A stretch of 63,371 nt of DNA, counting the filler, from Ministeria vibrans ATCC 50519 (taxonomy: Eukaryota; Protista; Filasterea): NCBI GenBank assembly GCA_943704425.1. It is 7 parts of 7 records of this genome, joined end to end, with 100 filler letters (N's around TTAATTAATTAA, not from the genome) between each part and the next. Parts side by side here need not be neighbours in the genome. Positions count along the whole stretch, not along the records: positions 39,850 to 55,555 come from CALSCP010002060.1; 6 more parts are not named here. The stretch is one strand, 5' to 3'. Positions 39,850 to 55,763 of the stretch are shown in pieces. The translations under genes were made by a program, and so were the position numbers. The notes beneath the pieces are model-generated. The model made no database searches, was not told where the DNA came from, and was given only the letters and a program-made list of their open reading frames with translations. Positions within the stretch are counted from its first letter, which is position 1. The number at the start of each line of letters is the position of its first letter.

Positions 39850-42800
39850 ACTTACCGACGCAGCGGTAGTGCCACTGGTTGTCGTCCACAATGTCACGGA
39901 AGGTTGCCGCCTTGGGATAGGTGGAGGGGGCGTCCGTCTCGGTCATGGTGATGGAGCGGAAGGTTGTGCCGCCCAGCTGAATGAGCATGTTGGCGCCGAC
40001 GCCGTTGGGGATCTTGTAGGCAAAGCACATGTACGGGTAGACGTTGGTGTCGTAGCCGGTGGACGTTTGAGAGCCTTCAAGGCCGCTGCTGCCTTCAAAG
40101 TTGGTTCCGTAGTTTCCGCCGCTCATGTACAGCGAGTACTGGCCACGGAAAGCAGTTGTGTTGGTAATGATGGGGTCACCATTGTTGCGCGGGAGCCAGT
40201 CGTCGGAGCTGCCGGGACCACCCTCGAAGGTATCCAGGTCATAGAAGACGGACGAAGAGAAGTCAAAGTCAGCATCGGGATCGGTGGCAATGAGCGGCAG
40301 TCCAAGCTGTGTGCCACCCGTGGTGGTCTCGGGAATAGTGCGCCAGTTGTCCTCAATGGTCGGCGGAGTGTCGTCAATGGCCGCACACACGGTACACGAG
40401 AGCTTCCAGTTGGTGACGTACGCGCCAAAACCACTGTCCTCAACCTCGACGGGGTAAATGCGGTTGCCCGATTGGGAGCTAGCGGATGCACCTGGATACG
40501 CTTGGGGGTTCTCGTCAACGCACGCCCAGTCAGACTTGGGGTATCCATAGTAGCCGCTCATGAGGTAGCCGCGGTACATAGTGTGGAAGCCGCTGGGGCA
40601 AATCTGGTTTCCGGTCTGCATAAAGACACTCGGTGCGGGCACCTGGCACACAACACAGGGCACTTCGTAGCCATCGAGTGTGGTAAATTGCGACGGCATG
40701 CCAGAAGTGGAATACTCTGTGGCCCACAGTCCACCTTCGTCCTGACTGCCCGTCGAGTGGTAGGTTGAATCGGGGAACTCGTCGGGAATGTCCGCCATGC
40801 AAAGGTAGTTGAAGCCACCACCGTAGTAGGTTGAGCTCGTCGACTGGAAGTTACCAGCCATCCATCCCTTGTACAGCTCGACTGTGTTGGCGGGACACGA
40901 ACGTTTTCCCCAACGCACAAATGCAGGGCCTTCGTTGGACGAGCACTGGGCGCAGGGAAGTTCGTCGTTGATCGTATAGGCGGTATTGCCCACCGGCACC
41001 GATTCAAGTTCAACACTCTCCATGTTGGAACCAGTCTCAGCGTTGAGGTTGGACGACTCACCCGGCTCTGCATCCAGGTCCATGCACGAATACTTGGTGC
41101 GATACTCGCGAAACGATGTTGAGCTAGTCTCGTCGTAGGTGCGCGAACTAGATACAATGAAACCTGAGTAGTCTAAAGTCCAGCGAGGCGGACAGGTCAG
41201 CTTGCCGTGCATTATCACCGAGTGGTGACGTCCAGTGGCCACACAGGATGCACATGGCACGGACGCATACAGGTTGGAAGACAGACGCGGCACCAGCTGG
41301 CCATACTCGGCGGTGTTAAGACCACCACCGCTGTTCTGAGTGCCGGCCACGGTATCGAGCCATTCGGGCTGAGGGGGCATGCACAGATATTCGGCAACGC
41401 CACCAGAACGACCCGACCGTTCTCCGGCGGCAACGCCCGAAAAGAGAAGCTCGGAGCCAACAGGACACGTTTTGCGTCCCCACCGAATGTATTGGTCGCC
41501 AGTGTTGGAAGGGTCGCTGCCATCGGAGATACATTGAACACACGCTACTTCACGGCCGACATACGACGAGTAACCCTGGACGTCGGTGATCTCAATAGAG
41601 TATGCGAGTGCACCATTTTGGTTGCCCGCCGACAAGACTGACTCAGGATCTTTGTCAATGCACTCGTAGGTAGAACGGTACTGTCCGTACTGGTTAGAGG
41701 CAATGTAGCCTTGATAGGCGACCTTGAAGCCCACGGGGCACGACGTATGACCAGGCTGCACAAACGTAGCTGTGTTGTTATTGTAGCCACAGAGGGAACA
41801 CGGGATATCTTTGTCACGTAGAGCGCTCAGTGGCGACGGACTATTGGTCGTAGCAAACTCGTATTCGTAACGGTACATACGACCCGTATCCGTAGAACTT
41901 GTGCTGAAGCCGTAGATGTAATTGATGGCAACTGGCATGCACAAACGCCCAGCACCGCTACCCAACTCATTGTAGTTGGATCCTGCGCCATAGCCATGGT
42001 AGATAAGGGAGGTGCCGTCGGGACAGCTTGTGCGTCCCCATCGCACAAAGTTGCTACCATGTTCGCCAACACGATCGGGAAGCACAACAACATACACCGT
42101 AGTCACGCTTGACCACTGGTCGCCTGTCTTGACACGGACCGACAGGTCGTACTGCGTCTTCACTTCGTAGTCAAGGCCGCCATTGGGCAGGCTGAGCTGG
42201 CCCGTTGTGGGCGAGAGCGCAAACAGCCCACTTGGATCCGAAATGATCTGCCACTCGGGCGAGCCGGTCCAGGTTGCGGCATTGGCCTGGCGCGCAAAGT
42301 ACAAGTGGGGCTCGCTGATGGTGCTGATAGAAAAGTCATCAATCTATAAGGAGAGAGAAAAAAAAGAGGAAGAAAAAAATAAGACACTGAGTCCATCTCG
42401 AAAGTGGCACGTACCCAAAACTCGCTGGTGTAACCCGCGTTGGAATTGCTACTTCCCGGATGGAATTTGATACCAGTGACAAAGTGTTGAGACGATCCAA
42501 TGAAGGCATCCAGGAACGCATCCAGGTTCTTGCACGAGTAGTGCCATTCGCCATCATCAATGATGTCGTTCCACGTCGCCTTCTTGGTGTAAATGGAAGG
42601 AGACTCCGTCTCCGTCATGGTCATGGAGTACCATNNNNNNNNNNNNNNNNNNNNNNNNNNNNNNNNNNNNNNNNNNNNNNNNNNNNNNNNNNNNNNNNNN
42701 NNNNNNNNNNNNNNNNNNNNNNNNNNNNNNNNNNNNNNNNNNNNNNNNNNNNNNNNNNNNNNNNNNNNNNNNNNNNNNNNNNNNNNNNNNNNNNNNNNNN

Positions 42801-45800
42801 NNNNNNNNNNNNNNNNNNNNNNNNNNNNNNNNNNNNNNNNNNNNNNNNNNNNNNNNNNNNNNNNNNNNNNNNNNNNNNNNNNNNNNNNNNNNNNNNNNNN
42901 NNNNNNNNNNNNNNNNNNNNNNNNNNNNNNNNNNNNNNNNNNNNNNNNNNNNNNNNNNNNNNNNNNNNNNNNNNNNNNNNNNNNNNNNNNNNNNNNNNNN
43001 NNNNNNNNNNNNNNNNNNNNNNNNNNNNNNNNNNNNNNNNNNNNNNNNNNNNNNNNNNNNNNNNNNNNNNNNNNNNNNNNNNNNNNNNNNNNNNNNNNNN
43101 NNNNNNNNNNNNNNNNNNNNNNNNNNNNNNNNNNNNNATCAGGTTCTTGCACGAGTAGTGCCATTCGCCATCATCAATGATGTCGTTCCACGTCGCCTTC
43201 TTGGTGTAAATGGAAGGAGACTCCGTCTCCGTCATGGTCATGGAGTACCATGACGTGCCGACTTGCACCAGCATGTTGGTCTTGACTCCCTGGGGAATCT
43301 TGTAGGCCATGCAGATGTAGGGGTACACGTCGCTGTCGTAGCCTGCGGTGGTCTGGCCAGCCTCCAGGTTGGTTGACGACGAACAGTCAAAGTTGATGCC
43401 CCACGGACCATCTTGAAGGTGCAGCGAGTAGGTACCACGGTAGGCAGTCGCCGAGGTGATGACAGGCGTGCCCAAGGTACCGGGGGCCCACGAGTCAACA
43501 GAGTTGGGACCCGCTTCAAAGGTGTCCAGGTCCCAGAAGGTGTCCATGGAAAAGTCAAAGACAGCGTCAGGATCAATCGCCTGCAAAGGCTTGCCCACAT
43601 CCGCACCACTGCCTGCAGTCTCAAGCACAACCACAGACTGACCGGTGGTCACCTGAGGAGGTTCGTTTGTCAGACGAACGCACTGCACGCACGAGGACTC
43701 CCATCCTTGGTACATGGCCTTGCCACGCTCGCCTGTAGTTGTGAATCCCGCGTACTCGGAGGGGTACAGATAATGAGCACCTCCACTGGTCGAGCCGCCC
43801 GGAAGCATCTCGGCGGTGGCATCAATGCACACTGAGTCACCTTGGTAGTTGCTGCCGGCATAGGCAGGCATGAAGATGAAGCCGCTATAGGCAGTGCGGT
43901 AGTTGACAGGACAACTCTGTGATCCCATTTGCGTGAACACATCGGGCGCAATGGTCTGGCACACCACACAGGGAACCATGCCGCCGTCGAGGGCAGTCAT
44001 ACCTGGAATACCACCATTGGCCGTCTGGTAGCGTGTGTTGTACAAACGCGCCTCTGAGCTGGATCCAGTCGAGACACTGGGATATTCAGGAGTCGCTTGA
44101 GCGCACAACAAGTCGGCACCACTGCCAGTGTACGAATAGTAACTCGCAGAGGCAAACCCTGTGTAGACAAGGCCATCGCCCGCAGGACAGTCTGAGCGAC
44201 CCCAGCGTACATAGGTGGGCCCTTCGTTGCTGCTGCATCGCGAACACGCAACCTCCTTTCCAGACGACCAACCACTTCCGCTCACCGTCGTTCCATAGTA
44301 CGTGTCGGCGTAGACCCACGACGATGATGACGACGAACTATCACCCAGAGGATCGGGGACAAAGTCCTTGTCAAGACACATGTGCGTCGTGCGATAGTAG
44401 CTCGACGTGTAGTAGTTGGCTGCAAGAATGCCGCTGTAATCGAGAGTCCAGCGATCAGGGCAAGTCTCGCTGCCCGTGACCATAATAGACGTGTGGCGAC
44501 CCTGTGCAGCACAGCGAGCACATGGAACCTGTGCATAGTTGTTGTCAGAGAAGGTGGTCGACGAGGAACGGAACTCGGTGGAGTAGGTGTATGCACCACC
44601 GTTGTTGCCGGGCTGCGTTTCATCCCACTCGGGCGAGAGAGAAAAGCATTGGTAGTCGGTACCACTACCGGCGTCGTTGTAGTAGTGACCGCCTGTGACG
44701 CCACGGTAGAGCATGTCCGAACCGACAGGACAGTCGACGCGGCCAAACCGCGTGTACGCTGCGCCTGTTGGCTCGTCCGCAATACATTGAGTGCACGTGA
44801 ATTCAAATCCATTGGTGCTAGTGGAGTAGCCGGTCAACCCGAGGTTCTCAGCGAGGTAAGCACGCCCTATTGTGGTGGTGGTGGTGATAGAGAGGCCGTC
44901 CGACAGCTTGTCAACGCAGATGTAGTTGGAGCTGTACTGTCCCGTGGCCGACGCAAAGAGGTAGCCCTCAAAGGCTGGCGACCAGCCATCGGGGCACGAG
45001 CGGCTTCCGGGCATCATAAAGGTGTTGGTTGCATTGGTGCGACAGACGGCGCACGGCAGCTCTTTGCTGTCCAGCAGCTTCATCGTGGCGAGATTGCTGT
45101 ATGCGGCCGTATAAAACTCGACGGGATACGAACGGCCAACGTAGCTTGTTGAGGCAGTGCCAGTGGTCACACCCGAGGCGTAGCTTGTGTCTGTGGTCTG
45201 ACAAAGACGACGGAAACTCGAACCNNNNNNTCAAACTCGACGGGATACGAACGGCCAACGTAGCTTGTTGAGGCAGTGCCAGTGGTCACACCCGAGGCGT
45301 AGCTTGTGTCTGTGGTCTGACAAAGACGACGGAAACTCGAACCAGATGCAGAATAGTAGTTGCCAGTCATGACACCTTGGTGGACAAGGGTGGAAGAGGC
45401 AGGGCAGGTGACCTTGCCCCAGTGAATAAAGGTGTCGCCTTGGCCATCAATGCGGTCTGGGAGCACCAGAATGGTGACCGTGGCCGGCGTAGAGCTCCAC
45501 TGACCACCGGATTTGGCGCGCACTGTGATGGTGTACGAGGGTGTCAACACCGAGTCGAGTGTGCCCGTCTTGAGTGTCAGCTGGCCTGTTGATGCACCAA
45601 TCTCAAAGAGCCCAGTTTCGTCCGTCAGAATCTCCCACTGCGGTGGTGAGGACCACACACCCGCATGTTCTTGGCGCGCATAGTAGACGGACGGCTCGGG
45701 AATGGTACTGATAGAGAAGTCATCAATCTACAAAAAAAAAAAGCAAAAAAAAGCAAAAAAAAAACAAGAGTCAAATTTAAAGAAACCCCAAAACAGACAC

Positions 45801-48800
45801 ACACACACATTCGTACCCAGAATTCACTTGTAAAGCCAGTGTTGGACGTACTGCTTCCCGGATGGAACTTGATCGCGGTGACAGCGTGTGTTGCTGTCGA
45901 CAACAGTCCATCGAGTTCCGCATCGAGGTTCTTGCACGAGTAGTGCCACTCGCCATCATCAATGATGTCGTTCCACGTCGCCTTCTTGGCGTACAGCGTG
46001 GGCGACTCCGTCTCCGTCATGGTGATCGAGTACCAGTTAGTGCCGCCAATCTGTACCAACATGTTGGTCTTGACTCCCTGGGGAACCTTGTAAGCCATGC
46101 AAATGAAGGGGTACTTGTTGGTGTCGTAGCCTGCGGTGGTCTGACCCGCCTCAAGATTGATGTTGGACGAACAGTCAAAGTTGATGCCCCACGGACCATC
46201 CTTGAGGTGCAGCGAGTAAGTGCCACGGTAAGCAGTCGCCGAGGTGATGACAGGAGTGCCATGCGCACCGGGCGCCCACGAGTCAACGGAGTTGGGTCCC
46301 GCTTCAAAAGTGTCCAGGTCCCAGAAGGTGTCCATAGAGAAGTCGTACACGGCATCGGGATCGGTCACTTCGAGAGGAGCACCCACAGCACCACCAGTGG
46401 TAGTGGAGTCAAGGACAAACACGGACTGATCCGTCACAATGGGTGGGTCATTTCCGAGCGACTGACACACGGCACAGGTAATTTCCCAATTTGTGTAGTA
46501 GCCACGAGGAAGCTGAGAGCCTTGCAGCGACACCGGGTAGAGGAGCGCGACGCTTGATGTGGTCGTTGACTTGCTGAGACCCTGAAGCGAACGAGGATCG
46601 TTGTCGATGCAAATGGGGTCGGTTTTGAAATTGTTGTACTGCGTCGAGAAAAGGTAGCCGGTGTAGGAGGCACGGTAGTTTTGCGGACAGGTCTGCCCGC
46701 CGCTCTGGACAAACACCGTGTTGGCACTCTTGGTCATGCACACGGCACAGGGCACACCATCACCATGCAGCGCATTGAGTCGCGTCAGACCAGTGCCCGA
46801 CGTCACGTAGCGTGCCATGTAGATGCGAGCAAGGTCGTTGTTGGAGGTGGTTGAGGAGTAGCCGGAGCGAGGACGCTGTCCGGCACGCGGCATGCACATG
46901 TACTCAGAGCCAGCACCGCCATACGAGTAAGCTGTGTAGCTGTCAGGACCACTCACAAAGCCTTCGTAGACAAGACTCGCGTCCGTGGGGCAGTCAGGTC
47001 GACCCCAGCGGGTGTAGGTCTTGCCAATGTTGGTTGAGCAGCGTGTGCATGGCACCTCTTCATTCGTGACGTATCCCGAGGCGCCCGACGGGAAGTTTTC
47101 AATCTCAAGTGAGTACATGAGAGCCGCCTCGCTAGTAGTGTCGTCGGTACCCACCGGGTTACGCTGTGCCGTCAGGTCTGTACACATGAAGCCAAGACGA
47201 CGATGAGAGTAGTGCGACGAGAGGTACATGCCGGAGTATTCGGTGCGCCAGCCGGCAGGACATTCGGTGTGCTGCGGGAACTCACGTGTCTCAACCTGGT
47301 CTGGAGCCTCGCAACGAGCGCAAGGCACCTCGCCTCCACTGAGATACGAAAAATTAGGAATTTCCGAGGAGGTACGGTACTCGGCGGGCATCAGGCGGTT
47401 GCTCGTCTGGTAGCCAGCGGTGTAGGTCAAAAAGGTGGGATTCATCGTAAGACAGGAGAATCCTATGACACCGTCCGAGTTGTAGTCGCCTCCAACGGCT
47501 GTTCCACTGTAGACCACATTGGAGGAGCGAGGACAGATGGAACGACCGTAGATGACGTAGGAGGTACCGGTAGGGCGACGGTGGTCTTGTAGATTAAGTT
47601 GGGGCTGAAGCGAAGCCGACCGGGTGCTGAAGCAGACGGCACACGTCACTTCGTAGCCCGCTTGGCTGCTGGCATAGCCTGGCATAAAGTAGTACAGCTC
47701 GGCAGGGTACATGTGAGCGCTTGATGCTTGTGAGGATTGATCGGCGTCCGAGGCAACGGATTGCTGGTCGACGCAAACGAGTTTCTGACGGTAGGTGGAC
47801 GCGCCAAGCAGGTAGCCTGAGTAGGCACTGGTGTAGCCGGTGGGGCACTCGGTGGTACCAGGCAACTCAAAGACGTCCACGCCACTGTCGACGGAGCAAA
47901 CAGCGCAAGGAATGCCACGGCCGTAGAGAGGCAAGAGACTTGACGTGCCCTGAGACGACCGCCAGAAGTAGCGCGCGAAGTAGATGTAGGCGTTGCTGCT
48001 GGCAGCTGTCGTGAAATCATGGTAGGTAGGGTCACTTGTGAGACAGACAGGCTCGGCCAGGGAACCACGGTCGTTGTAGTACGATGTGGACATGTCACCG
48101 ACCAGCACCACGGTTGTGTTGGGGGGACAGATACGTGTGCCCCAACGTGTGAAAGTGGGTTCGTGCGCGGATACCTGAGGCGGCGTGGGCAGTACGTTGA
48201 TACCAACTTCGACGGGTGCAGACCACATGCCCCCCGACCTGGCCTGAACCGTCACGGTGAAATTGGTGTTGCCATCGCTCTCGGGCAGAGTGACGTCCGC
48301 CTTGACGACCAGCTGACCGGGTGTCGTTGACGATAACTCAAAGAGATCCGACGAGTTGGCCAGACGCCACTCCTTGACGGCCGATGTCCACGTCGCCGCA
48401 TTCGCATGTCGCGAAAACGCAACTTGAGGTTCGGGAATGCTCGAGATTGAAAAGTCATCAATCTACAGAGACAATAATAAAAATAAGATTAACAGTAAAA
48501 CGGATGAGGGTGTGACGTATTAGGTTTAAGGCTCACCCAAAATTCGTCTGTGAATCCCGTGACAAGATTGCTACTGCCCGGGTGGAACTTGATGCCCGAG
48601 ATCTGGTGAACACCGGTGCCGATGAGAAGGTCAAGCTGGGCGTCGAGGTTCTTGCACTCGTAGTGCCAGGCATTGTCGTCGAGGACTTCTGTCCAGAAGG
48701 CACGTCGCGGGTAGATGGAGGGTGACTCCGTCTCGGTCATGACCATGGAGTACCAGGTGCCGCTGATGAGAAGAAGCATGTTGGTTTTGGTGCCCGGTGG

Positions 48801-51800
48801 GATTTTGTAGGCCATGCAGATGAAAGGGAAGTCGTTGGTGTCGTAGCCGGCGGCCGTCTGGTCAGTTTCAAGGCCTTGCGAGCCGACAAAGTTGACACCC
48901 CAGTTGCCTTCGGTCAGGTGCAGCGAGTAGGTGCCGCTAAAGGCAGTTGTCGAGCTAATGGTCGGTGCAGCACCAAACTCACCGGCAAGCCACGCGTCGC
49001 TCGAGCCGGGACCGCCCTCAAAGGTGTCAAGGTCGTAGAAGATGGCCGTTGACATGTCACTGTTATCGTCGGGATCAACAGCGAGAAGGGGCGCGCCAAT
49101 GGCAGCGCCAGTCGGAGCGCTGTCAAGCACCGCCACGGTCTGGTTCACCACGACGTAAGGCGGTTCGTTTTGGATGGAGATACACTGGGCACATGTGAGT
49201 TCCCAGAAATTCGTGTAGCCAGGCGCCATTGTGCCCTCCGCCTCAACTTGGTAGTAGCGCATGGCTGAATCGGCACCAATGCTGGAAAAGACAACGGGCT
49301 CAGGAGATTTTTCAAGGCAAATGTAGTCGCTTGCATAGTTGCTATAGTGAGACGACATGAGGTAGCCGTTGTAGGCGGTGCGAAATCCCCAGGGACAAAT
49401 CTGGGAGCCAGGTAGAGTGAAGGAGGTGGCCACTGCGGCCTGACAGACCGCGCAACTGAGGTCCTCCTTGTAAATGTAGTTGTTCTCGCTTTGTGGCCAA
49501 CTCGACTGGTACACTTCGGCGCGGTAAATGAGAGCGCCAGTGTTGGACGACGTCGAGTATGTGTTGGTCTCGGGGAAGTACTTGGCGGGGGGCAGACAGA
49601 GAGTGTCGGAGCCGGAGCCGGTGTGGCCGTAGTACTTGCTTGCCATGAAACCTTGGTACAAGAGAGCATCAGGGTTGTTGCAGTCGCGCGCGCCCCAACG
49701 TGTGTAGGAGGGACCACCGTTGGAAGAGCACATGGAACAGGTGAGCTCCTTGTAATTGGTGTAGTCCCACGGGCCAAAGTCGCTGCTCTGAGGCTCGGTC
49801 GGATACATGTAATTGGCAGAGTCGGCCGAACCTGAGCCGGCTGGGTCAGCCTCAGCGTTGCGGTCCATACAAGTCCACGTTGTCGCGTAGTAGTTCGACG
49901 TGTAGTAGTTTGCCATGAGAAAACCATTGTACTCTTGAGTCCAGCCGACGGGGCACTCGGTGGTGCCGGGCACCATGAGTGTGGTAGGACGTCCAATGGT
50001 CTCGCAGCGCACACACGGAACGTCTCGGCTGTTGAGGCCCGTCAAAGCACTGATTCCATAGCCCGAGGTCTTGTACTCGCTTCGGTAGACGTATCTAAAA
50101 GGGACGCCAAGAAAGGATTAGATGGTGTAGAATAGTTGACAAACAAAAAGTCGCAAAATACAAACTTACGCGCCGCCATTGCTCGATGCAGACGATTCGG
50201 CCCAAAGGGGTGACTCGGTGAAGCACTGTGGATCGACTCCGCTGCCAGAGTGTGAGTAATGCTTGCCACCGACGTGACCCTGATAGATTTCAGTACTGCC
50301 AGCGGGACACTCGGTGCGACCCCAGCGCACGTAAGTGCCAAGACCAGCGCCTGACGCACCCACGGATGGACTCGTTGCATTTTTCATGCATACAGCACAG
50401 GTAAACTCACGACCCTGGTCGGCTTCGTAAGCGCCAGGAAGACCAACTTCTTCGGCGGGGTACGCACGACCTTGATTCGAGGCAGAGGCGAGACCCAGGC
50501 CCTGCGCGACGTCCGACACACACATGAAGTTGAGGCCCCACTGGCTGGTGTAGGCAGCGGCAAAGAGGTAGCCCTTGTAGACGGTGGTCCAGTCGCCTTC
50601 GGAGGGGCACGCAAGTGTACCAGGAATCATAAAGGTTGCGGCAGGCTTGGAGGGGCGGCAGACAGCACAGGGCATCTCGTAGCCATTGAGAGCTTGCATG
50701 CTGGTCATGCCGTGGGTCGACGCGATGACGTATTCGAGAGGGTAGAGACGACCGCCCGCGTCGTTGCTCGTGGACACGTTCATGTAGTTGACATTGTGTG
50801 TCATGCACTGGACATTGGTGCCGGAACCGGCCGAGGAGTAGTAGTGAGCGGCAGCACTTCCCTCGTACACTATATCGGTGCCGGCGGGACAGTCACGTCG
50901 ACCCCAGTGTGTAAAAGTGTCGGCCTGCCCGCCCTGAACAGACTCGGGAAGGATTTTGACAATGACAAAGCCGTTGCCGGAGATACCACCCGAGTGAGCA
51001 GCAACCGAAACAACCACCTCGGGCTGTCGCAAAGCGCTGAGCAAACCCGCCTGTTGCACAAAGAGCTGACCGTCCGATGTGATGTTGAAGGCACCGCCGG
51101 CCGTGTCCGACACAATGCTCCACGTTGGCTTTGCATCCCATACGCCCGCATTGCGTTGACGCTCAAACAGGACATTGGGCTCTGACAACGACGTGATGCA
51201 AAAGTCGTCGATCTGTTGAAGGAAAGAACAATAAAATAGTGTGAGTATTTTTCATGTTTTTCAATTTTTGTGATTGATTACCCAGAATCCGCCTCTCGAG
51301 GTACTGCCGGCGTTTCCATGGTCGGCCGGAAGGAAGATGACGGCCGAGATGAAGTAAGGGTCGGTGCCAACAAAGCCGTTGAGTTGGGTGCGGACGTTGA
51401 TGCAGCGCCAGTGCCACTGATCATCGTCAAAGACAGTGCCCCACGATCCACCTTTGGGGGTGGTGGGGGTCTCACCGCCGGTCATGGTCAGCGAGTACCA
51501 GGTGGTGCCGACGAGGATGGCCATGTTGGCCTGGACACCCTTTGGAATGCGGTAGGCCATGCACATCCAGGGGAACAGGTCGAGGTTGTAGCCGCCGGCC
51601 GATTGACCCGCCTCGACTCCGTCAGCACCCTCGAAGTTGCGCCCGTAACTTCCATCGCCCATGTACAGCGAATAAGAGCCACGGTAGGCGGTGGTGTTGG
51701 TCACGGTGGGGTTTCCGCCGTTGCGGGTCGTCCAGTCATCGGCACTGCCTGGGCCTCCTTCAAATGTGTCCAGCTATGCAACATCAAACAAACACGAGTC

Positions 51801-52746
51801 AGTGACTTGAGAGGTTTCGTTTCGCGATTGATTTACATCGTAAAAGTTGTTGGTCGTGACTTCAATGTCGCTGTCAGGATCGGTGGCGACAACGAGTGGG
51901 CCCACGGGAGTGCCGAATGCGGCGGATTCGACGGCAAAGGCCGACTGATTGGCAACGACAGGAGGCGAGTCGACGAGAAGTTCGCAGACGGTACAGGTCG
52001 TCTCCCAAAAGTTGTTGTAGTAGGGCAAAGAGGGACCGCCTGAGGTCTCTGTTTCGACGGGACTGAATTCGGCGGAGACAGAGACGCTAATGTCGGAGAA
52101 GGAGGTGGTGGCGGCCGCCTTGTCGACGCAAATGTACTGTGTGCTGTGGACGGTGTACTTTGGCGCCATGATGTAGCCGTTGTACACGGTCACGTACTTC
52201 TGCGGACACTGCGAGCCGCCCATGACTGTGGTGACCTTGGGCGAAGTGGTGAGACAGACGGTACAGGCGGGTGTCTCACGATTGACCCGGTTCATTGATG
52301 TGATGCCAAGGCCCGACGTGTAGTACTCGGCGCTGTAGAGGAAGCCGCCATTGTTGCCGCTGCTGCTGTGGTACGTAGTGCCAGGGTACAACTAATGGAG
52401 GGAAAAAAATGAATGCAAAAGATGAAGAGACAGACAATGGGATGGTGTACCTGTCCCTCCGGGTGCATACAGAGGGCATTGTTGCCACTTCCGTCATACG
52501 ACGAGTACGACGAAGAGGTGCCCGTGTCACCATAGTTGATATTGGCCGCAATGAAACCCGAGTAAACGAGGGTGTCCTTGCTGGGGCAGGTGAGGCCGGC
52601 CCAGCGGGTGTAGAGGGTGCCCGTGTTGGCAGAGCAGTGCACACATGGGATTTCATAGCTGTTGCGGTATGTTTCGGTGGTGCCGCCTTGCCACTCGGTT
52701 GGGTACCACTGGGCATTACTGATGTGTAAGAAAATAAAGAAGTGTA

Positions 52747-52777
<31 letters not shown>

Positions 52778-54513
52778 AAGAATCAAAATATTGATAGAGA
52801 AATAAAGTAAGTAACAGGCACATGACAACTAGTTGGTCGTACGAAGAGACGAAGGTGCCCGAGGAGGGGGTTGCATCCTTGTCAATACAGACATACTGCT
52901 GCTGGTCGTGGGTGTAGTAGGCGGACATGTAGACGCCCTGGTAGTCGGTGGTGAAGCCATTGGGGCACTCGTAGCGACCGGGCACGGTGACGGAGGATTG
53001 ACGCTGTTTGGTCTCGCACACGGCACAAGGGATGTTGGTATTGGACAAATCCGTAAACGCACTAATGCCATAGCCAGACGTGATGTAGCGCAGTACATCA
53101 AGACGCGCATCGGCCTGCAATCCCGCGACTGTTTCATCAAATGCCGGATTGGGAGTCAGACTAATAATATTAATGAGAATAATAATAACAATAGTAAAGT
53201 ATGGTGAGACGATGAAAATCATAATAAATTATTTATGATAAGGTATTCTGTTATCGCTTGCGATCGTACCATTGGGGAGCACTTGTGCCTCCGTTTTCAT
53301 TGTAGCGGGACGACGCTGTCTGGCCGGCGTAGATCAAGGTGGATTCGGAGTCACACACATCTCGACCCCAGCGAATGTAAACAGAGCCGAAGGACTAAAA
53401 TAAGAAAGATGTATTGGGGAAAAAAAAAAAAAAAAAAAAAAAAAAACGTCAGAATAATCTTGTGGGTTTTGTGGGCTTTTTTACGTTTGTCGACTCTGTG
53501 TCCTTGACACACTGAGCACAGGTCATTTCCTGGCCAGAGGGCTGGTACTGCTCGCCCTTGAGGGTGTTGGTCTCGATGGGATAGACGCGAGAGCCGTCTG
53601 TGGCAGCGCCAACGCCGACAGGGGCGTTGTTGATGCAGACGGCGGAGGTTTTGTAGTTGTTGGCGCCAGACGAGAACAGGTGGCCACGGTAGGCGGCCTT
53701 GTACCCCGCCGGGCACGTGTATGAGCCTGGCTGCATGAACGTGGGCGTGTCGCTGGTGCAGATGGCACACGGAAGCTGCTGGTTGACGATGGGGGCGAGC
53801 CAGGGTAGGGCCGTCCAGGTTGCGGAGACGCTCGGCTGATAAGTCGCGTACAGGCGACCCGACGCCTCGCTGCCGGTGGAAAACTCCATGTAATTGACGT
53901 CCGACGTCATGCACAGAAAGTTGGGGCCGCTGCCTTGGGCGCCGGAGTAACCTCCTGCGAGAAACAAGGAAGAGGGAACGAGGAAAAAAAAAGAAGGTCA
54001 AGTGCCACGAGAAAACCTCACAAAATCCCGTTGAAACTGTCGGTCCATCCGCAATGGCGGTAGTGTTAATGAAAGGGGGGGGGTTTAGCTGAACGTCGGG
54101 GGATTTTAGACGGTGCAGGAGCTGAGATGTTTGGTCAACTGATAAAAGCGTGGGATTTTTTTTTTGGGTCTCGGTTCGTCTCAGGAGTTGAGAGAGTGGA
54201 GCCATTAAACGAGCTTAGATTATGAAGGAATGTGATTGGATATAAGTACAAGCCAATATAGGATAAAGGGGAGAGCGGAGATGAAGATTTAAGGGGCAAG
54301 AGGGAGTGGACAAATGGAGAACGCGCGAGAAGGGTCCGATATAAGGTCCACCGCAAACGTACCCGCCATCCGGCCCTGCAGAATAAAATCCGTGCCGTTT
54401 GGACACGAGGTCACACCCCAGTTGATAAACATGGTAGATGAGTATCCGTCTGAATAGTCGTTTGTGGCGAAAGCACAGTAGGCCAACGCAAGAATCGCGA
54501 CCAAACGTCTCAT
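39850..54513 (-). CDS. Giant secreted multidomain protein: at least 5 copies of [3 short-chain-collagen/NC1-like domains + cadherin-like domain with inserted ~170-aa domain]; 3'-truncated
   Basis: Signal peptide 'MRRLVAILALAYCAFA'; 15 domains with '[YF]xRWGxxxCP...VPCAVC...PGxxxCPxG[WY]...ELxCxxC'; cadherin motifs 'NxPP', 'PLxAxDPD', 'LFxIxxxTGQL', 'LDYE'; exons join via GT-AG introns. Confidence 0.85.
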
Positions 54514-54934: not shown

Positions 54935-55523
54935 TCACAATTCATCGTTCTCCTCGACGGGCGGCACGCCGTCCTTGCCGTCCCAGGGCGCCGTCTTGAC
55001 GAGTTTAGGGTCGCCCTTGGGAAGCGACATGGTGCGTTCCTTTCCGGTCATAAGACCCCCAATAAACTCACCAATGGACTTGACGGCAAAGCCACCGCGC
55101 AGAACCGCATAGCGACCCTTCTTGACGTTCATAGCAACCATCGCTGAAAATGAGAAGAGTGATGAAAAGAAACGATGAGTTGGAGGTTCGTTAAGGGGAA
55201 CAAAAAGAAACACACAAAAGACACAGACACACCAAGCCAAACACGGTCTTACCGGGGTAGCCAAAGCCACCGACACCGACAGACTCTTCAAAGGCAAACT
55301 GAGCGGCAGCCTCGGCCCAGACATACTTTACTGGCTTGCGCTTGTACTTGTCGGCGACCTTTGTAAGCGTGTCGAGGTAAGCATTGCGCCCAGACGCTTG
55401 GCTGTCGAGAATATGCGGCAGGAATGCCACGACGCACAGCGAGGTTGTCTTGCACACGTCGTCAAAAACACTGCTCGAGGTCAGCTCGACTGGCTTGGGC
55501 GCCGGAAGGTTGGCAGCGACCTC
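54935..55523 (-). CDS. PDIA6: Protein disulfide-isomerase A6 (P5), C-terminal exons
   Basis: 'LCVVAFLPHILDSQASGRNAYL', 'GGFGYP|AMVAMN', 'PWDGKDG', ER-retention signal NDEL*. Confidence 0.9.
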
Positions 55524-55763
55524 CTACGATGAAAAAAAAGAGGAAGAAAAAAAAANNNNNNNNNNNNNNNNNNNNNNNNNNNNNNNNNNNNNNNNNNNNT
55601 TAATTAATTAANNNNNNNNNNNNNNNNNNNNNNNNNNNNNNNNNNNNNNNNNNNNCACATGTTTGCGTGCACTGCATCTGGGGTTAGTGGTATAGAGCGC
55701 GCCCTGGGCGTACTACAGGCAGGCTTTCAAGAATGGTTGAAGGATGCGTCACAGGATGGTGCG

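Follow-up and report, generated by a model that had tools for sequence, protein, structure and literature searches.

A giant collagen-free gene in the Ministeria vibrans assembly with triplets of NC1-like domains that may fold as single-chain pseudo-trimers

Gene model and repeat layout

We analyzed a window of 63,371 nucleotides (nt), by which we mean the whole stretch of DNA, composed of pieces of the Ministeria vibrans assembly. One piece carries on its minus strand a gene that starts with an ATG at 54513 and runs to 39851, where the piece edge cuts its 3' end. In the gene model, 11 GT-AG introns (408, 90, 109, 124, 59, 63, 69, 75, 74, 89, and 71 nt) separate 12 exons, and the reading frame is stop-free over 4,232 amino acids (aa; 12,696 nt of coding sequence) up to that edge. 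Exons were joined by script only, with length, phases, and stops counted, and sequence searches were run exon by exon. The encoded protein consists of five units, each with three Cys-rich [YF]xRWGxxxC(P) domains followed by a spacer. The features are as follows.

39851..54513, minus strand: whole gene within the piece; intron phases all consistent, stop-free, 3' end at the piece edge
54466..54513, minus strand: start codon and signal-peptide-like N-terminus (MRR, hydrophobic run, AFA), assigned by eye
51984..54429, minus strand: triplet 1 (domains 1-3), across exons 1-6; a split codon at intron 3 restores an invariant Cys
50916..51983, minus strand: spacer 1; cadherin-like start, beta domain (51773-51282), intron, IDDF strand, and divergent cadherin-like part; no Pfam match
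49182..50915, minus strand: triplet 2 (domains 4-6); intron 8 interrupts domain 5
48154..49181, minus strand: spacer 2; cadherin-like start, beta domain of about 190 aa, intron 48536-48463, cadherin-like part
46465..48153, minus strand: triplet 3 (domains 7-9), in a single exon
45431..46464, minus strand: spacer 3, including intron 45816-45728; Pfam Cadherin at 25.4 bits (E 1.9e-5), under the cut-off
43680..45430, minus strand: triplet 4 (domains 10-12), with a 6-N gap (45225-45230) inside
42050..43679, minus strand: spacer 4, with a 503-N gap (42635-43137) and intron 42414-42344 inside; Pfam Cadherin at 34.1 bits, over the cut-off of 28.8
40385..42049, minus strand: triplet 5 (domains 13-15), used for the structure model
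39851..40384, minus strand: spacer 5, cut by the piece edge within the beta domain

The motif [YFW]xRWGxxxC occurs nine times in minus-strand coding frames, and its single plus-strand occurrence is a chance one; the variants INWG, HWG, RWA, IYG, and RFG bring the domain total to 15 in five triplets. Ten of the 15 domains lie whole in one exon, and each of these has exactly eight Cys at conserved positions. Introns or the 6-N gap interrupt domains 1, 2, 3, 5, and 10, and splicing makes these domains whole; in domain 2, a split TG/T codon gives back the invariant Cys. The preliminary description had read the gene as a signal peptide followed by 15 domains in five triplet-and-spacer repeats, longer than 4,000 aa and 3'-truncated, and the gene model bears this out. 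Its statement that Gly-X-Y is absent also holds: runs of four or more were looked for on the coding strand, and none was found.

Both flanks of the 503-N gap carry an identical 112 nt, and both flanks of the 6-N gap carry an identical 111 nt. When each flank overlap is merged, a single open exon (45727-42415) results, which is in frame with exon 12. The larger gap may hide at least one additional repeat unit, and the gene is best counted as having at least five. We rejected the possibility that the repeat units are assembly duplicates, since the DNA identity between units is at most 87%, the two overlap artefacts of 111/112 nt aside.

Within the triplets, the domains are joined by mostly short linkers (6-24 aa). 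Sequence identity is higher between domains that occupy the same position in different triplets than between domains at different positions (34.1% versus 29.5%, p 9e-5), and the same-position domains group in a tree. Because of this similarity and clustering, we conclude that the triplet was duplicated as one unit.

Each spacer is composed of a cadherin-like start of about 45 aa, a beta domain of about 190 aa, and a cadherin-like part of about 80 aa. The beta domain runs from DLDTFEGGPGS to EFW/IDDFSIS, with a conserved phase-0 intron at the slash. When compared with Pfam Cadherin (PF00028, cut-off 28.8 bits), the copy between units 4 and 5 scored 34.1, the copy in a related locus (L001, see below) 29.0, and the copy between units 3 and 4 25.4. 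No match was obtained for the copies between units 1 and 2 and units 2 and 3, nor for the cadherin-like halves that precede the beta domain. The beta domain itself had zero matches in Pfam. Its leads are weak: CBM22 of xylanase Y (E 0.06-0.18 over 45 residues) and Laminin_B (E 0.77-0.78), and its AF2 model reached a pLDDT of 50. It is possibly a CBM-like domain of the CBM4_9/CBM22 kind, perhaps a nested jelly roll. The preliminary description had placed one cadherin-like unit in each spacer. The cadherin-like parts were found, but the spacer is not a single plain cadherin, as the extra beta domain is present.

Family and predicted packing of the Cys-rich domains

We place the Cys-rich domain in the spongin-type "short-chain collagen C4-like" family, which is sister to collagen IV NC1 but divergent. 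Animal members were matched in Branchiostoma (P0004; E 1e-20, 36% identity) and Sycon (P0005; E 3e-12), and the nearest Atlas clusters bear the name of this family, in agreement with the earlier proposal that the motif marks the C-terminal domain of spongins and short-chain collagens. A profile of the domain matched 3,708 representative proteins at E<=1e-3 and 2,257 at E<=1e-10. In the PDB, two profiles (A1 and A4) matched collagen IV NC1 chains only (E 1e-6 to 0.03), with noise starting at E 0.25. HMM alignment to 6mpx and 5naz placed both CPxG...YxG motifs and the CAVC (CxxC) motif in register with NC1, and alignment A1 revealed two homologous lobes per domain, each with CPxG...YxGY and ending in CxxC. 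Spongin-type domains have been published as homologous to NC1 for animal members (Aouacheria 2006, as related in PMC5395295 and 10.1101/2021.10.08.463732).

The domain differs from collagen IV NC1 in having eight Cys per domain versus 12, and RWG in place of the HSQ motif. The Pfam model C4 (PF01413) matched none of the 10 intact domains even at E<=10, and whole exons likewise gave no match. Of the domain assignments suggested earlier, NC1 was recovered by profile but not by Pfam C4, and Cadherin exceeded its cut-off in one spacer copy of the window. With spongin short-chain collagens, the protein shares the [YF]xRWGxxxCP start, the two lobes, the Cys pattern, and the lack of HSQ. In contrast to their single C-terminal domain after a short Gly-X-Y region, it has 15 internal domains in triplets and no collagen part; it shares the domain with these collagens and is not a member of the same whole-protein family.

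We modeled triplet 5 with AF2, using an alignment of 24 rows, and obtained a pLDDT of 86 and a pTM of 0.90. In a Foldseek search with this model, the best four matches were single-chain NC1 trimers (E 7e-15 to 9e-13), with TM-scores of only about 0.5. When the model was compared with engineered single-chain NC1 trimers in VIA-align, the Z-scores were 12.1, 10.8, and 10.4. These alignments took in 413-433 residues, spanned model residues 1-555, and kept the chain order, at an rmsd of 4.5-5.1 A and an identity of 13-17%; NC1 monomers gave a Z of about 5. In a wide fold search against 48,161 representative chains, only two reached Z>=2, and both were NC1. Together with the profile matches, this sustains the proposed relationship of the domain to collagen IV NC1.

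The three domains were also submitted to complex prediction as separate chains. The ipSAE was 0.49, compared with 0.14 for the best control; contacts agreed to at least 91% between runs, and partner pLDDT was at least 76. Of 78 solved complexes, 51 reach the pass mark of this test, as do two of 108 mismatched pairs, and passes up to 0.60, including this one, are graded as weak support. NC1 complexes are present in the training data of predictors of this kind. The models predict that a triplet packs within one chain as an NC1-trimer-like pseudo-trimer, as had been suggested from the sequence. In its predicted fold and its arrangement of three two-lobed domains, the triplet would resemble the collagen IV NC1 trimer/hexamer (1li1, 1m3d), where NC1 is C-terminal to a long Gly-X-Y triple-helical region that the domains of the window lack. 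The engineered single-chain trimers (6mpx, 6wku, 8txn) are laboratory fusions, whereas the triplet of the window is natural. Unlike animal spongin-type members, the protein would not need three separate chains.

Related proteins

The sole close relative is locus L001 in the genome of another organism (GCA_025491055.1, contig JAOQFC010008119.1, protein P0009), with 50% identity over 831 aa. It shares the unit order of the window gene (IDDF strand, cadherin, triplet, cadherin-like start, beta domain, and the EFW/IDDF intron), but its 5.5-kb contig is incomplete at both ends. P0009 was the sole match when homologues were searched with the spacer. Metagenome contigs, searched with a single protein, yielded zero related loci, and the C-terminus was not recovered there.

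Triplets of the same domain, free of collagen like the window protein, were found in other protists. Choanoeca perplexa P0006 has nine domains and Bicosta minor P0023 three; in both, as in P0020, TNFR_c6 follows the triplets. Three proteins of Ancoracysta twista (P0001, P0010, and P0014) combine MACPF with three domains, and the triplet domain is also present in proteins from Picozoa single-cell assemblies (SAGs; P0026 and P0031). In metagenomic P0007, six NC1-like domains are followed by Ephrin_rec_like, TNFR_c6 repeats, a TM-like region, and SH2 domains. These protist proteins differ from the window protein in their low identity to it (about 30%), in their partner domains (MACPF, TNFR_c6, Ephrin_rec_like, SH2, and Methyltransf_FA), and in the absence of the cadherin/beta-domain spacer. 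Complete or long collagen-free relatives have three, six, or nine domains; collagen-bearing animal members have one. Molluscs, amphioxus, and sponges have many members of the family, and multi-domain proteins occur in the molluscs Tegillarca (P0022) and Batillaria (P0034).

We found no description of the collagen-free protist triplet proteins in the searchable literature. The combination of modules had been called unfamiliar at the outset. The triplets themselves are not unique to this gene, as they recur in many collagen-free database proteins; no paper describing such triplets was found. InterPro-based surveys name Ministeria as the sole non-animal bearer of NC1 and list no choanoflagellate with it (10.1101/2021.10.08.463732; PMC5395295). 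The Ministeria vibrans protein MvCN is described as carrying a single canonical NC1 with HSQ behind 81 Gly-X-Y repeats (Grau-Bove 2017; 10.1101/2021.10.08.463732). Both MvCN and the window protein are non-metazoan and have a domain of the NC1 type; in contrast to MvCN, the window protein is of the spongin type, lacks collagen, and is made up of triplets.

Interpretation and alternative readings

In our preferred reading, to which we assign a probability of about 70%, a genuine nuclear gene with introns, from a marine microbial eukaryote, encodes a giant extracellular protein of adhesion or of a matrix, composed of natural NC1-like pseudo-trimers that each form within a single chain, its role being proposed by analogy alone. 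The module would be three tandem spongin-type NC1-like domains, each two-lobed and with eight Cys, free of a collagen helix. Joined by the mostly short linkers, the three domains would fold into a compact pseudo-threefold body like the collagen IV NC1 trimer cap. At least five such bodies would be strung along the chain, with the cadherin-like parts and the beta domains of about 190 aa between them. The bodies may serve as rigid docking or adhesion knobs, possibly paired face to face as NC1 trimers are in the collagen IV hexamer, a head-to-head assembly that has chloride sites and a sulfilimine Met-Lys cross-link, and the spacers may add Ca-dependent stiffness and perhaps glycan binding. The product would be a secreted or surface protein with a function in adhesion, in a coat, or in a matrix.

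The stretch could instead be the ectodomain of a giant type-I signaling or adhesion receptor, with the triplets as ligand-binding heads and with a TM region and cytoplasmic signaling domains in the missing C-terminus. This is a possible but doubtful reading. The domain order of P0007, the TNFR_c6 that follows the triplets in P0006, P0020, and P0023, and the fact that the gene is cut at its 3' end all speak for it. However, TNFR, Ephrin-receptor-like, TM, and SH2 parts were not found in the 4,232 aa, and the five-fold periodicity of knob and spacer looks structural; L001, the sole close relative, is likewise incomplete. We consider it unlikely that three parallel chains align in register and that each NC1-like domain trimerizes with its equivalents as in collagen IV, even though the single C-terminal domain of animal proteins is thought to trimerize between chains (Fidler 2017, PMC5395295). 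Such an arrangement is disfavored by the domain numbers of three, six, or nine in collagen-free proteins, by the mostly short linkers within triplets, by the three distinct conserved positions, and by the intrachain model, whose pTM of 0.90 goes along with matches to single-chain trimers in the same chain order.

Two further readings concern the origin of the contig and of the NC1 likeness. That the contig comes from a contaminating invertebrate and not from a protist is very improbable, despite the abundance of the family in molluscs, amphioxus, and sponges and the multi-domain mollusc proteins. A PDIA6-like neighbor gene lies only about 420 nt away, and the introns (the 408-nt one aside) measure 59-124 nt, both of which point to a compact genome. 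A search with the PDIA6-like fragment matched only fragments with 47-58% identity. The stretch was matched in small 2011 isolate runs, in algal and seawater metagenomes, and in one poly-A metatranscriptome, and a metagenome scaffold carries a 96%-identical open reading frame. The collagen part is absent, and the closest named multi-domain relatives are protists. It is hardly credible that the likeness to NC1 is convergent, with an unrelated Cys-rich beta fold and an NC1-like model that is a prediction artefact. Such convergence would fit the E values against single NC1 chains (only 0.0016-0.03), the failure of Pfam C4 to match, and the different Cys count. Against it, two profiles match NC1 exclusively with the CPxG...YxG motifs and CxxC in register, NC1 was the sole fold found among 48,161 chains, and the homology of spongin-type domains and NC1 is published for animals (Aouacheria 2006, via the two sources cited above).

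The preferred reading, that of an adhesion or matrix protein built of pseudo-trimers, bears on the history of NC1. NC1 selects, trimerizes, and networks collagen IV and counts as a hallmark of basement membranes in animals. The domain described here, NC1-like but divergent and of the spongin type, is missed by Pfam C4, belongs to a family of more than 3,700 representative clusters without any Pfam model, and occurs without collagen in protist proteins. It is conceivable, although on balance rather improbable, that the collagen-free triple NC1-like module is an old, widespread extracellular building block of protists and the ancestral state, and that the NC1 of animal spongins and collagen IV arose from one domain that split off and was fused to Gly-X-Y. 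If so, the intrachain pseudo-trimer would have become the inter-chain trimerization and network-forming knob of basement membranes, and the window protein would be a surviving case of an "NC1 matrix" that predates collagen. The gene offers a concrete, testable route by which the collagen IV/spongin NC1 trimer could have arisen, and its predicted natural single-chain NC1-like trimers are material for structural work.

Gene model, assembly gaps and host genome

All long open stretches between positions 39850 and 55555 lie on the minus strand. The features of this region are as follows.

54935-55555, minus strand: 3' end of a PDIA6-like gene with one intron, ending in an ER-retention-like NDEL
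39851-54513, minus strand: giant gene, from its ATG at 54513 to the edge of the piece
45225-45230: 6-N gap, flanked by 111 identical nt (45114-45224 and 45233-45343)
42635-43137: 503-N gap, flanked on both sides by 112 identical nt (42523-42634 and 43140-43251)

Eleven introns of the giant gene were located from GT-AG sites and the consensus of the repeats. They are 408, 90, 109, 124, 59, 63, 69, 75, 74, 89, and 71 nt long, and their donors follow the pattern GTA(A/C)G. Sequence searches were run with each exon separately, and exons were joined in scripts solely to count length and stops. The 12 joined exons were open throughout and their phases agreed from exon to exon, giving a coding length of 12,696 nt (4,232 amino acids [aa]) that is still open at the edge of the piece. 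At one splice, joining a split TG|T codon yields an invariant Cys, a good internal check of intron placement. Simple repeats were observed in introns: (TC)n(CA)n in intron 4 (52719-52842) and long T runs in intron 10 (45725-45773). The protein starts with MRR, a hydrophobic run and AFA, followed directly by the first Cys-rich domain; by eye, this N terminus resembles the signal peptide proposed in the preliminary description.

The 111-nt flank of the 6-N gap had no further copy anywhere in the piece, so a repeat is not the cause and the break is an overlap between contigs left unmerged. By the same reasoning, the 503-N gap most likely has this origin as well, with its size misjudged. The duplicates of 112 and 111 nt at the gap borders look like unmerged k-mer overlaps between contigs, and merging both overlaps yielded a single open exon in frame with the next one. 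The 503-N gap may conceal additional units (one triplet of Cys-rich domains plus one spacer each), making five a minimum count. Remaining gaps of the assembly may be spurious too, each duplicating about 111 nt.

The PDIA6-like gene lies upstream on the same strand, its stop about 420 nt from the giant-gene ATG. Its fragment matched the human PDIA6 b-domain (E = 1.4e-24) and plant PDIL2-3 (E = 1.5e-23). Together with spliceosomal introns of 59-124 nt in the giant gene, this close neighbor indicates a compact eukaryotic nuclear genome. Animal contamination would be another origin for the contig; it is unlikely, and the giant-gene stretch was also found in small 2011 isolate runs, in algal and seawater metagenomes, and in a poly-A metatranscriptome.

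The repeated Cys-rich domain and its kinship to NC1

Motif and exon reading confirmed 15 Cys-rich domains arranged in five triplets. The ten domains encoded in single exons are 173-184 aa long, are 27-35% identical to the first, and contain exactly 8 Cys each at fixed positions. Each domain consists of two lobes, and every lobe has a CPxG...YxG motif and ends in CxxC. As described initially, the giant-gene coding strand holds no Gly-X-Y run. Units are no more than 87% identical at the DNA level and are thus real copies that have diverged. Domains at the same position in different triplets of the window were 34.1% identical, versus 29.5% at different positions (p = 9e-5), and they clustered in a tree, indicating that duplication copied whole triplets, whose three positions are distinct. 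The tree also showed other lineages in which the domains of one triplet were mutual closest kin, so triplets were either formed more than once or homogenised.

When used singly, the Cys-rich domains gave no match in Pfam. In the PDB, a ten-domain profile matched collagen IV NC1 and nothing else before noise began at E = 0.25; a fused NC1 trimer scored E = 6e-6, and single NC1 chains 0.0016-0.008. Both CP motifs and the CxxC were aligned in register. A broader profile including animal members also retrieved NC1 only. Direct sequence relatives include animal short collagens ending in the Cys-rich domain (Branchiostoma, Sycon), and the closest Atlas clusters are named "short-chain collagen C4-like". 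These matches agree with the earlier assignment to a spongin or short-chain collagen domain related to NC1. The domain lacks the HSQ motif, the absence of which separates spongin-type domains from canonical NC1 (10.1101/2021.10.08.463732).

The family comprises 3,708 representative proteins at E<=1e-3, of which 2,257 remain at E<=1e-10. Four single-domain members (P0080, P0081, P0089, and P0090) carry varied N-terminal partners (CBM96, a proprotein-convertase P domain, FG-GAP repeats, a short collagen), and none matched the Pfam model C4 at E<=0.01. The whole family seems to have no Pfam model. In the related proteins P0016, P0029, and P0043, an RWG-type motif recurs every ~90 aa, so each lobe of a domain retains it; this form is more symmetric and may be more primitive.

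Predicted triplet packing and spacer

The unit-5 triplet (domains 13-15; 555 aa) was modelled with a 24-row alignment. Mean pLDDT was 86 and pTM was 0.90, showing that the three domains are confidently placed against each other. The top four Foldseek matches were single-chain NC1 trimers (6wku, two chains of 8txn, 6mpx; E = 7e-15 to 9e-13). Against single-chain NC1 trimers, VIA-align of model residues 1-555 gave Z scores of 12.1 (rmsd 4.5, 413 residues aligned), 10.8, and 10.4, versus only about 5 for NC1 monomers. In a Foldseek-independent structure search, 2 of 48,161 chains reached Z 2, and both were NC1. With the three domains supplied as separate chains, a complex test scored 0.49 against 0.14 for the best control, with contact agreement between runs of at least 91% and partner pLDDT of at least 76. 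The tool's verdict was "weak support": among 78 solved complexes, 51 reach its pass mark, as do 2 of 108 mismatched pairs, and passes up to 0.60 count as weak. NC1 complexes are known structures and stand in the training data of such models, which may contribute to this score. The proposed single-chain pseudo-trimer is backed by the predicted model.

The same model (ma548938e211d) had weak, low-probability Foldseek matches to apicomplexan perforin-like proteins, in their three-fold APC-beta domain (6d7a, 5ouo, 7pln; E = 7e-4 to 1e-2). NC1-like triplets may thus have a link to the C-terminal domains with which perforins bind membranes.

The spacer had been described as one cadherin-like unit. 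Cadherin-like parts are present, but a further domain lies between them:

Part 1: about 45 aa including a DPD motif, by eye resembling the first strands of a cadherin repeat; no Pfam match
Part 2: roughly 190 aa, beta-rich, from DLDTFEGGPGS to EFW|IDDFSIS
Part 3: about 80 aa, matching Pfam Cadherin in some copies

Part 3 scored 34.1 bits in the unit 4/5 spacer (above the cut-off), 25.4 in unit 3/4, and 29.0 in the related locus L001; the remaining window copies had no Pfam Cadherin match. A phase-0 intron at EFW|IDDFSIS has an identical position in all four complete units. The sequence suggests a single cadherin repeat into which a jelly-roll domain is inserted. The AF2 model of the middle domain had a pLDDT of 50, and weak leads were CBM22 (E = 0.06) and Laminin_B (0.77-0.78).

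Relatives and possible function

Among 166 retrieved proteins, members with collagen or another N-terminal part have mostly one domain, and complete or long collagen-free members have 3, 6, or 9. The collagen-free proteins of this kind were as follows.

Choanoeca perplexa: collagen-free, 9 domains
Bicosta minor: collagen-free, 3 domains
Picozoa single-cell assemblies: collagen-free, domains in 3, 6, or 9
Ancoracysta twista (P0001, P0010, P0014): MACPF plus 3 domains
P0007 (JGI metagenome, 3,827 aa): six NC1-like domains followed by repeats of the Ephrin_rec_like and TNFR_c6 types, a TM-like region, and two SH2 stretches

A metagenomic protein, P0017, likewise fuses MACPF/perforin to one NC1-like triplet. 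L001 (GCA_025491055.1, JAOQFC010008119.1, 1-5556), a locus in the genome of another eukaryote, is orthologue-like: it shares the unit architecture at 50% identity and the EFW|IDDF intron position, but has additional introns within the beta domain. An exon 96% identical to the giant gene was found on a metagenome scaffold.

The giant protein combines a secretory-type start with over 4,200 aa of disulfide-rich modules of extracellular type, and the predicted pseudo-trimer body, modelled for one triplet, occurs at least five times along the chain. We infer an adhesion, coat or matrix protein. Each body would be a rigid knob held by 12 disulfides, and its flat face may dock to a second body within or between molecules, as in collagen IV. 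The cadherin parts could supply Ca-dependent stiffness, and the possible carbohydrate-binding domain in the spacer could supply glycan attachment. Alternatively, it could be the ectodomain of a receptor of giant size resembling P0007, which has the look of a giant receptor in the choanoflagellate style whose heads are NC1-like; this hinges on the C terminus.

NC1 was reported as undetected in 22 choanoflagellate proteomes and, outside animals, as present in Ministeria only (10.1101/2021.10.08.463732), and spongins were placed as originating within animals (PMC5395295). For animal members, the domain family and its NC1 kinship were already known, and collagen-free triple NC1-like modules were not described in the papers that our literature search covered. 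New relative to these papers would be a natural NC1 trimer in single-chain form, predicted here in protists and in a new multi-unit architecture.
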